Below, piece by piece: positions 15,101 to 18,100 of a DNA stretch of 64,000 nucleotides. How positions within the stretch are numbered: the first letter of the stretch is position 1; every line of letters starts with the position of its first letter. This DNA comes from Salpingoeca rosetta (Eukaryota > Protista > Choanoflagellata). The notes under the pieces were generated by a model. It searched no databases and was not told the origin of the DNA. It worked only from the letters and a program-made list of their open reading frames with translations. A program made the position numbers and the translations under genes. The stretch lies in assembly GCA_033442325.1 (NCBI GenBank), contig JAWQFM010000005.1, positions 2,072,331 through 2,136,330 of the forward strand. Reading direction: 5' to 3'.

Positions 15101-18100
15101 GAGGTGCGGGTGGCCTGGGGGTGCAACCGCTCGGGCCGCTCAGCAAGCGGCAGCGACTGCGCGCCCGGCTTGGACAGGTCGGGCTCCTGAACGCCGCCAT
15201 CGGCGGAGATGGAGGGCGAGCGCAGGAAGAACGTGGGCAGCGCGTCTTTCCTTGAGGGGGTGGTGAGTCCTAGGTCGAGCAGCAGCTGCTGGCGCGCGCG
15301 AAGGTAGTACACGATGGCGTCGAGGGCAAACGTCAGGTGCGGGAACTGTGACACGTCCAAGGAAGGCATGGTGTGCGCATGCTCTCCGCTGTGGCCACGA
15401 AGCAGCGACAGCACCTGGCGCTCGAGGTCGCGCCGGCTCGCGTGCGCAAACAAGTCGGCAGCAGCAGGGGCGCCCCCGCGCCGGCCGCCGTGGTGCCGGT
15501 CCTGCTCCTGCTGCAGCTGCTGGAGCAAGGCGGTGTGCAGCACGCCGCGGATGTACTGTTCGCGCTGCTGCCAGCCCGACTGCAGCATCCCCGACACCAG
15601 CTGTGCTTCGAGCGCATCCATCCCCGTGCGCACCCACGTCCATGCCCGCTCCATCTGCGTCTCCACGGCCTCAAACGCAGCACGCAGCAGCGCACGCTGC
15701 ATGCTCCTGCGCTGCTCCCGCTTTTGCTCGAGCTCAGCCGCCGCAGCCTTGTTGTGCGTTTTGGATGCCGCTGCTGCGTCGCCGTGGCCGCTGGCTTCAG
15801 CGGTGCTGACGCTGGCAGCAGGTGTCTCTTTCTTTGCACGTTTTGCTTCCGGTTCATCCTCGCCAGCTGCAGCTGCGGCGGCCATTGTGGCCGTTGTGGC
15901 CGTTGTGGCAGTCTCGTGCTCTTGCTCTGCTGCTTGCTCGAGCGGTGTGATGCGGGCAACGTCGTTGTCGGAGGGCGGCGGCACCGCGCCGAGAACAAGC
16001 AGTCGGCAGCCAACGCCAGCAACGTCCACCATTTCCTTGACCATGCGGTTGAAGAGGCGCGCCATTGCCTGTGCAGTGAAGGACTTGGACGGCTCGACAA
16101 GCGTCAGCGAGCTGGGCATCTTGCTGTCGTCAATTGCCACACCGGACGTCGACAGCCGCCGAAGCGAGGGTATGCCGCCACGTGTGCGCGACACCCACTC
16201 CCACCCGCGGCGCGGCTTTGCCTCAAGCACGTTCATCACAGCTCTGGGCGTGGTATCTTCACTCACTGCAGAGACGCCCGCACGTGCCCGTGCCATGGCA
16301 GCGACGGTGCGGCGGTGGCGCCCGAGGCCGCGCTCGGCGTGACCGCCATGGCCACCATGACCACCCACCTCCACAACGCCGTCGTCAACACCGTGGCCAC
16401 TGCCGGCTTCACCGCTGTCCCACCACATTGCGTTTCTGCGGTGGCGGCGGTTGCGGCGCCCACGGCGGCGGGGCGATTCGGTTGCCAGCGGCAGACCAGA
16501 GAGGCTTGGACACACATCACTATGCGTCAGTAGACTACCTCTAGTCGGGTTCTGTAAGCCCCCTCTGCAACCTCTGGCAAAACTGCTTTCAAGCTTAGCA
16601 GGCCTATCGTCGTGGGTCCTGCTAGTATCCTTTCAGCTTTGAGGGAAGCCCAGAAATATACTTAATGCGCCCCTTATTGAATAGTCGTCGTTCTTCGGGC
16701 TTGCGCCCATGAGGGCTAACGAATTTACCTGCGAGCCTGCGACATTCGAGTGGTGCTGGACCCACTCTGTAAAGATCGCCACAGAGTTACAGGCGACTTT
16801 GTAGCACTGTAGAAAAGTATCACTCTTGGGGAGGTTGAGCTTTTTAAGTACAAGACCTATGGTAAGTGTGTGCTGATGGGGTTGCTTGGTCACCACTAAG
16901 GTCTGTTCCGATCTCTGACAATCCACTTCTGTGTGCGGGTAGGCCTATTGATCCCCGAAATGTCCGGTACGATACCTGATAAGCCTGATGAGCTAGCGGC
17001 TACTCTAACATCCGGGCAGCGGTTGTGTCGCGATGCTCGTTCAGCTGCTTGCACCAGGCCCTCGGCGGCGGCCCCTGCTGCCGTGGCGCGGCTCGAGGCG
17101 GTACGGGACCGGCCGCCTCTGCCTGTGGACTGTGGCATCCACATTGACACGTCCCGCCCGTTGTTGTCGTGCAGCAGTGTTTCATTGTCGGCATCGCCGT
17201 TCTCGCTGCCTTCACTTTCGCTGGATGACCCTGAATCCTGACCATGTCCAACAGAAACAGCGCCGAACGCTGCCTCGGCCACATCGTCCACGGCATCCTC
17301 GTCCTCGTCCTCCCCACCATCGCCGTTGGCGGAGTGGCCCCCTTGCCCATGATGATTGCGGCCGGTGTCGTCGCCATCCCCGTCGTCATCGTCCTCATTC
17401 TCGTCGTCGTCATCTTCATCATTGTCGTCGTGATCACGATCATCATCATCATCATCGACATCGTTGTCGTTGTCATCATTCTCGTTGTCAGCCTCATCAC
17501 CGCCGCCATTGGCATCGGTGTCGTCTGCAGCGGCATCCATGGCACTTGACGTGTCCTCGGCGTCCTCCCCCGTTGCGCCGGCCATCGTTTCACCACTGGC
17601 GACGGCGTCAGTGGCATCAGCATCAGCACCGGCATCCATGGCATTTGATGCTGCTTGCGGTGTCACACGCTGCTGCTGCTGCTGTGGCCGCTTTTTCCGC
17701 TGTCTTCGCTTCTGCTGCACCGGTTTGGTGGTTTCGTACGGTCGCAGTGTGCCGTGCTTCTTGCGGGCCATCGGCGGTGGGTGAAATGGGTTGAGCGTCT
17801 CTGCAAACAAGCCCTTGATTGGGTCTGCAAGCGCGAGCGGAGGCGGCCTGGAAAACGGTGAAAGCGGCGACAAGAGGCCCACGCGCACCGGCGCTAGCAC
17901 GGCGTCCGCAGCCTCAGCGAGCTCCCGCATGGAAAACGCAGGGAAGCGGTGGAACACACGCCGACAGGTATGCAGTAGCGGGTGGTGTGGGTCAAAGTCC
18001 TGCACGGTGGCAGCGTTGCTGCCATCGCCACCGTCCCTGCCGTGACGGCTGCGCCTGCGTGTGGAGGCGTATCCATAGGGGTTGTTTGCTGACGTGTCGT

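Follow-up and report, generated by a model that had tools for sequence, protein, structure and literature searches.

A candidate spliceosomal intron and a putative upstream indel in a UBR5-like HECT ligase gene of Salpingoeca rosetta

A 64,000-nucleotide stretch of the genome of the choanoflagellate Salpingoeca rosetta (assembly GCA_033442325.1, contig JAWQFM010000005.1, positions 2,072,331 to 2,136,330; hereafter the window, in whose numbering positions are given unless another sequence is named) contains two neighboring minus-strand genes in the public annotation, one coding for a 1930-residue protein and the other for a 1415-residue "UBR5" protein. Protein alignment identifies them as the two halves of a single gene for a UBR5-like HECT ligase, interrupted by an insert of 490 nucleotides (nt) at 16520–17009 on the minus strand. 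By a modest balance of the evidence, the insert is probably an intron that is spliced out within this one gene. A more specific version is quite possible, if not quite probable: the insert would be a 490-nt GT..AG intron, and a one-base indel would lie a short way upstream of it. Three further features of the locus are shown by the sequence. First, GT and AG lie at the composition boundaries of the insert. Second, the favored reading frame switches before the donor. Third, the insert has no mobile-element or ribozyme feature.

Evidence for a single UBR5-like gene

The region from 6121 to 22428 of the window is identical, base for base, to scaffold GL832957.1 of assembly GCA_000188695.1. The upstream exon (17011–19616, minus strand) is part of the annotated 1930-residue gene. 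Its frame runs through ..RHNRCPD into the insert and terminates there at a TAG codon (16896–16898, minus strand), which is the annotated end of that gene. The downstream exon (12121–16519, minus strand) holds a 1464-codon frame that opens at GTG 16515 (VCPS..), in a phase that differs from that of the long open reading frame (ORF) upstream, and the annotated start of the 1415-residue gene is the ATG at 16428. An earlier prediction for this locus, made from the letters alone (the original prediction), had placed the upstream stop at 16896 and the resumption of the HECT-bearing frame at VCPS, and the sequence bears out both. At 100% identity, the downstream ORF matches XP_004997997.1 / EGD79041.1 / F2TZL7, which carries the name 'ubiquitin protein ligase E3 component n-recognin 5'. 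No literature was found for the protein accessions.

With the upstream ORF as query, a representative search identifies a homologue in another organism, P0002, which is a single uninterrupted frame of 1871 residues on a 6.1-kb transcript contig (phmmer E = 4.4e-19). Two segments of the upstream ORF align to it by BLASTP: residues 1–25 to P0002 residues 1–25 (5e-07), and residues 376–581 to P0002 residues 177–345 (1e-22). Residues 274–1464 of the downstream ORF align to P0002 residues 961–1871 in the same order, with E values down to 1e-47. Because this one frame aligns in order to both sides of the insert, as one protein, the two annotated genes are one gene; comparing orthologues across the site was a check that the original prediction had proposed. 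With both flanks in one UBR5-like gene, a working mRNA of that gene must lack the insert, in agreement with the earlier claim that it must be removed at the RNA or DNA level. A true UBR5 (P0013) was also considered as a homologue of the upstream ORF and was rejected, its weak phmmer match not being confirmed by BLASTP.

Both flanks are intact, with no decay across 2330 codons, and coding composition extends to the insert boundary on either side, the 29 codons that precede ATG 16428 included. The downstream ORF contains a HECT domain (12127–13128, minus strand; Pfam 2.9e-60) in which the catalytic Cys context ..NTCSSRLSIP.. is present, with the Cys 31 residues from the C-terminus. Its best solved-structure match is human UBR5 (1.4e-73), and the next family, HACE1, follows at 4e-27. 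The earlier statement that neither side shows decay is therefore sound. Similar to human UBR5/EDD, which the S. rosetta HECT domain matches far better than any other solved HECT, the upstream exon has a weak RLD-propeller match (E = 0.0039). However, unlike human UBR5/EDD, no MLLE, UBR-box or EDD/UBA domain is detected by Pfam at E values up to 1 in the exons scanned, a scan that leaves aside 19617–19996, 21221–22119 and the exons upstream of 22752. The middle of the S. rosetta protein is alignable to only a few proteins. If this reading is right, the corrected model would replace two proteins that look unrelated with a single UBR5-like ligase of ~2330 residues or more. Such a correction matters for comparing animals with their closest relatives.

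Two further observations concern the same gene and its relative. The XP_004997997.1 model drops a 60-nt, in-frame, GC-rich 'intron' (GTGGGC..GAGCAG, 20 residues) at 14677–14736 of the minus strand, within the HECT-gene exon. P0002 aligns ungapped through the residues concerned, so this annotated intron is probably spurious, or else a minor in-frame splice variant. For P0002, translation was called from a TTG codon six codons after a stop, and AT-rich sequence ending ..AATAAG precedes it (contig L004, 440–470). That preceding sequence looks like a retained intron, ending at the protein position where the S. rosetta exon opens (~19625 of the window), and an intron position near there may be shared between the P0002 contig and S. 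rosetta. P0002 is probably 5'-truncated.

The insert and the reading frame before its donor

The insert extends from GT (17009–17008) to AG (16521–16520) on the minus strand. It has a GC content of ~50% and interrupts a long coding region of ~68% GC. The GC fraction falls from ~0.70 to ~0.50 exactly at the boundaries, which coincide with the terminal GT and AG. As a reference for local introns, a set of 93 candidates was drawn from 264 kb, comprising the window and 20 loci of 10 kb; their mean GC is 0.53. The published non-coding GC of S. rosetta is ~0.5 (PMC6875170). The position of GT and AG at the GC boundaries and the intron-like, non-coding-like composition of the insert are both counted in favor of an intron.

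The arithmetic of removal depends on the frame that is followed upstream. Removal from GT(17009) to AG(16520) takes out 490 nt and yields GAT|TGA, a stop, in the long-ORF frame. Two internal acceptors keep that frame: AG 16552–16553 (..CTTACAG, minus strand), which gives a 458-nt intron and adds 12 residues, NPTRGSLLTHSD, and AG 16594 (minus strand), which gives a 416-nt intron and adds 26. A 5-nt direct repeat, GATGT (ACATC on the plus strand), flanks the insert, with its upstream copy at 17008–17012 and its downstream copy at 16514–16518, both read on the minus strand. Removing the insert together with one copy restores the long-ORF frame (..PDVCP..). The original prediction had all of this right, as arithmetic, for removals of 490, 491, 494 and 458 nt and for the repeat. 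Its frame offset likewise holds against the long-ORF frame; what it means hinges on the true upstream frame close to the junction.

Codon usage near the junction points to a frame other than that of the long ORF. Frames were scored in 15-codon windows with a codon model whose training data came from other loci only, and 3012 true coding windows served as the control. The last ~15 codons before the insert (17011–17059, minus strand) score 5.2 nats better in a frame with codons starting at 17014 than in that of the long ORF. The GC content at third codon positions is 0.80 in this shifted frame vs 0.47 in the long-ORF frame, where long coding ORFs of this genome region have values of 0.73–0.8. 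A frame advantage of this size is found in 0.56% of the control windows for that particular frame, or in 2.4% for either of the two other frames. The segmenter used for intron finding also ended the upstream exon at 17055, not at 17011. At 34 exon ends that precede well-supported introns, the true frame has a median advantage of +6.4 nats and none falls below -4.9, so exon ends are not generally degraded; none of the 34 is as extreme as the exon end at the insert.

It is with the shifted frame that removal of a GT(17009)..AG(16520) intron brings the HECT exon into phase (..AAR, I, DVCPS..). Among the 17 AG dinucleotides between 16630 and 16505, 11 would keep the shifted frame open into the HECT exon and 3 the long-ORF frame. 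The non-canonical splicing put forward in the original prediction is thus not needed, since canonical GT..AG removal is in phase with the upstream frame that codon usage favors.

These features suggest a simple account of the locus. The sequence from 16520 to 17009 would be an unannotated spliceosomal GT..AG intron in one large UBR5-like HECT ligase gene, and the apparent frameshift would stem not from the intron but from a one-base indel ~45–85 nt upstream of the donor. In the shifted frame the exon would end in ..AAR followed by AT, and removal of the 490 nt would then produce T-GAT-GTG.. (I-D-V-C-P-S), in phase with the HECT exon. Cumulative frame scores place the putative indel site in a frame-switch zone at 17050–17095 (minus strand), with G runs at 17062–17060 and 17075–17072. 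The indel would probably be an extra base in the hybrid assembly of 454 and Sanger reads. Together, the intron and the nearby indel would have led the annotation pipeline to cut the gene. We infer splicing itself, the use of the acceptor at 16520, and the origin of the indel in the assembly rather than in a real mutation.

The S. rosetta assembly is a hybrid of 454 and Sanger reads, built with Newbler and Arachne (PMC4054682). Its authors reported a gene model split by an assembly gap, the septin pair PTSG_04363/04364, which they merged and confirmed by PCR on complementary DNA (PMC4054682). Assembly errors are plausible in light of this hybrid origin and of the authors' own example. Similar to the septin pair, one gene is annotated here as two neighbors, and a relative's single protein spans both. 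However, the cause there was an assembly gap, and the one suspected here is a one-base indel beside a candidate intron. If so, the locus illustrates how frame anomalies in a 454/Sanger assembly can mimic exotic biology.

Three further abrupt switches of the best frame are present in ~89 kb of coding-like sequence, all of them in GC-rich stretches and none with an intron-like gap. One lies at 43600–43700 of the window (minus strand), beside a C5 run. The other two are at 7215–7310 and 9440–9560 of locus L018 (G000:C5:1860001-1870000, minus strand). All three are candidates for one-base errors or real frameshifts.

Comparison with native introns and the sequencing runs

The 93 candidate introns share a recognizable layout. 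Donors are GTG[C/T]GT-like, position -3 of the acceptor is C in 69%, and the AG-free zone that precedes the acceptor has a median of 84 nt. Within the final 100 nt, 42 of the 93 have no AG at all and 73 have two or fewer (median 1, maximum 10). GT or CA runs of 8 nt or more are found in 83%. Lengths have a median of 311 nt and a 95th percentile of 837 nt.

Similar to the U2-type introns of S. rosetta, the insert has GT and AG at exact composition boundaries, a GC content of ~0.50 and a length, 490 nt, that is within the local range. Its donor, GAT|GTTAGAGTA, scores 4.9 bits, which corresponds to the 37th percentile of the (noisy) candidate set and the 90th percentile of exonic GTs. A second intron in this gene has the donor ATG|GTTAGT, which the GTTAG. 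of the insert resembles. Positions +4 and +5 of the insert donor pair with the canonical 5' end of U1, and +3 (T) and +6 (A) do not fit. Two genes for the U1 small nuclear RNA (snRNA), at 105.7 bits each, were found in the genome, at L025 1501–1664 (G000:C11:720361-720524) and in L026 (G000:C12:1451701-1451864); the copy that was read (L025) has the canonical 5' end ATACTTACCTG. A branch-point-like heptamer read from the sequence, TACTGAC (16526–16532, minus strand), places its A 7 nt before AG 16520 and 22 nt before AG 16505. It is a lead only, as no branch-point motif is enriched in the 93-candidate set.

In contrast to the C-rich, AG-free 3' ends of local introns, the 3' end of the insert is AG-rich and G-rich. 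As an intron it would be a strong outlier in this genome, and reading the insert on the plus strand makes it no more like a native intron. Several observations weigh against the proposed intron and indel, and they are gathered here. First, the last 100 nt of the insert contain 12–14 AG dinucleotides, beyond the maximum of the candidate set, and its AG-free zone is 9–13 nt. Second, the acceptor at 16520 scores at the 1st percentile, and those at 16552, 16520 and 16505 all fall at the 0–2nd percentile. Third, (GT)n and (CA)n runs in the insert do not exceed 6 nt, in contrast to most of the candidate introns, as the original prediction had correctly remarked. Fourth, no S. rosetta transcript ORF across the junction was found; protein searches with candidates of ~94 to 2562 residues gave only the annotated P0001. 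Fifth, the annotation, which was refined with RNA-seq, reads through into the insert and stops at 16896. The comparison set itself comes from a crude finder, a codon-usage segmenter combined with an iterated splice-site matrix, and includes false calls. The indel is drawn from codon statistics only, with a window length that was picked after viewing the data. Finally, of the 20 sequencing runs described below, 11 are guessed to be DNA (from studies of 2013, 2014, 2018 and 2024). An exact look-up of a 1435-residue ORF also matched no contig.

The departures from the usual layout would have their own interest. An intron without the GT-rich start and the long AG-free, C-rich end that are usual in this genome could serve as a natural test of the extent to which splicing needs that layout.

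For each run, an index of sequencing runs gives the share of sampled words of window 15500–18500 that the run holds, with the run type being the tool's guess. The share is 0.83 in all 20 indexed runs that hold this part of the window, and none is higher. If only the insert words were lost, 520 of 2971 words would be missing upon 490-nt removal, which gives an expected share of 0.825; 458-nt removal gives 0.836. The index is consistent with every indexed run lacking the insert. The uniform share argues against transcripts that retain parts of the insert as untranslated regions (UTRs), and fits efficient removal. If the DNA guess for the 11 runs is right, the insert would be absent from those genomes, the reference would hold an artefact or an insertion of its own, and the proposed explanation would be wrong or incomplete.

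Alternative explanations

It is conceivable, if unlikely, that the assembly is correct and that GT(17009), or a GT at 17054, is spliced to the internal acceptor at 16552 or 16594, so that part of the insert is exonic. These pairs give an open frame without assuming any sequence error, the acceptor at 16594 (4.5 bits) reaches the 32nd percentile, the intron finder itself picked the pair 17054/16552, and the 0.83 share fits this arrangement equally well. However, the acceptor at 16552 scores -0.2 bits (2nd percentile) and lies 9 nt after another AG, and the 36–78 nt that would be retained are insert-like, not exon-like, in composition. Such splicing also leaves the frame signal of the last 15 upstream codons unexplained (p ~0.006–0.024).

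Of similarly low probability is an insert specific to the reference, whether as a real insertion in the sequenced DNA sample or as an assembly artefact, with living cultures carrying an uninterrupted exon. The share of 0.83 is the same in all 20 runs, including those guessed to be DNA. The insert is unlike a native intron, and its sharp composition boundaries coincide with the 5-nt repeat whose excision restores the long-ORF frame. However, the DNA label is the tool's guess, and the share does not reveal which words are missing. The repeat, which the original prediction had offered as a route to frame-restoring excision, is present as described but not beyond chance: 14% of the 93 candidate introns have a repeat of 5 nt or longer within 8 nt of each junction, vs 16% of randomly paired junctions. 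Nor has a source emerged for the 489 nt. Searches of E. coli genomes, plasmids and phages gave no match to the insert. Exact matches to a 24-mer and a 25-mer from it are absent from 185,579 bacterial and archaeal genomes, and those to the 24-mer also from metagenome and viral contigs. As the laboratory lines used since then derive from the one that was sequenced, an insertion private to the reference would be unexpected, which counts against this explanation.

A related scenario is rather improbable: the 489–490 nt would be a very recent insertion of unique DNA in the reference DNA, absent from later cultures, and would represent either an intron at birth or DNA excised between repeats. It stays alive because runs guessed to be DNA have the identical 0.83 share. 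Only if the insert proves absent from the DNA of other cultures would the locus be a rare case of intron-like DNA gain.

An equally improbable account holds that the gene is truly broken, the insert or a real frameshift upstream having created a null allele whose frame terminates at TAG 16896 or at the post-splice TGA, or that it makes two proteins, as annotated, and that the HECT half begins at ATG 16428. Two such models are what the annotation, refined with RNA-seq, contains; a complete HECT protein can be read from the first ATG past the insert, and the insert offers no good acceptor. However, decay is absent over the 2330 codons, coding composition extends up to the edges of the insert and across the codons before ATG 16428, and the orthologue is one protein. 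An insert that served as 3' UTR and 5' UTR should, moreover, leave its words in RNA contigs and raise the share above 0.83.

The remaining proposals invoke removal by something other than the major spliceosome, and begin with mobile elements. Introner elements and new introns flanked by short direct repeats occur in Micromonas, Aureococcus and dinoflagellates, and among the intron gains of Daphnia. Similar to these, the insert is unique-looking DNA in a coding exon, with GT and AG at its two ends and a copy of a 5-nt repeat on either side. However, unlike these, it has no copy family and no terminal inverted repeat, its repeat is at chance level, and its canonical excision is out of phase with the long-ORF frame. 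The insert has one match in the 55.4 Mb genome and is thus single copy; its 20-nt ends have no other copy in the genome with up to 3 mismatches, and a search of the 264 kb with 7-nt words found no relative. Its inverted repeats include no terminal arm pair, and it has no tail. A published transposon survey lists no family of miniature inverted-repeat transposable elements in S. rosetta (PMC6875170). These results speak against a miniature inverted-repeat element and against an introner-like one, which was among the options of the original prediction.

The self-splicing idea fares no better. Rfam gives no relevant match to the insert up to E = 10, and the insert has no tRNA match. Folding z-scores against shuffles are -0.59 for the minus strand and -0.14 for the plus strand, no better than the shuffles. 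A group I or group II intron, or a densely structured RNA, is rejected on these grounds.

U12-type introns have a 5' site of /[AG]TATCCTT (GTATCCTTT) and a branch site of TCCTTAAC. The nearest U12-like donor in the insert, GTATCGTAC at 16975, has 3 mismatches to GTATCCTTT, at positions 6, 8 and 9, and the insert contains no match to the branch-site consensus. The U12 and U6atac snRNAs were not found in the genome by the same kind of search that found U1, which suggests that S. rosetta is without a minor spliceosome. Thus, removal as an introner-like element, as a self-splicing or tRNA-type intron, as a U12-type intron or by DNA excision between the 5-nt repeats is very improbable, even if the 3' end is unlike that of native introns and removal between the repeats restores the frame. 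The introner, ribozyme and non-canonical splicing readings are not supported, and the mundane explanation, an intron together with a nearby indel, is the most likely.

Two other candidates were considered within the insert and its surroundings and were rejected. A 103-codon open frame in the insert (16636–16944, minus strand) is not a gene: it has low protein-atlas recognition, a best Pfam E value of 0.19 and a negative host codon score. A terminal signature shared with a second segment of the window, 'Element A' (5998–6271), reduces to one chance 8-mer in common (E = 7.7). Element A is the single-copy, non-repetitive core of an intron in a calpain gene, with (CA)n on both sides.

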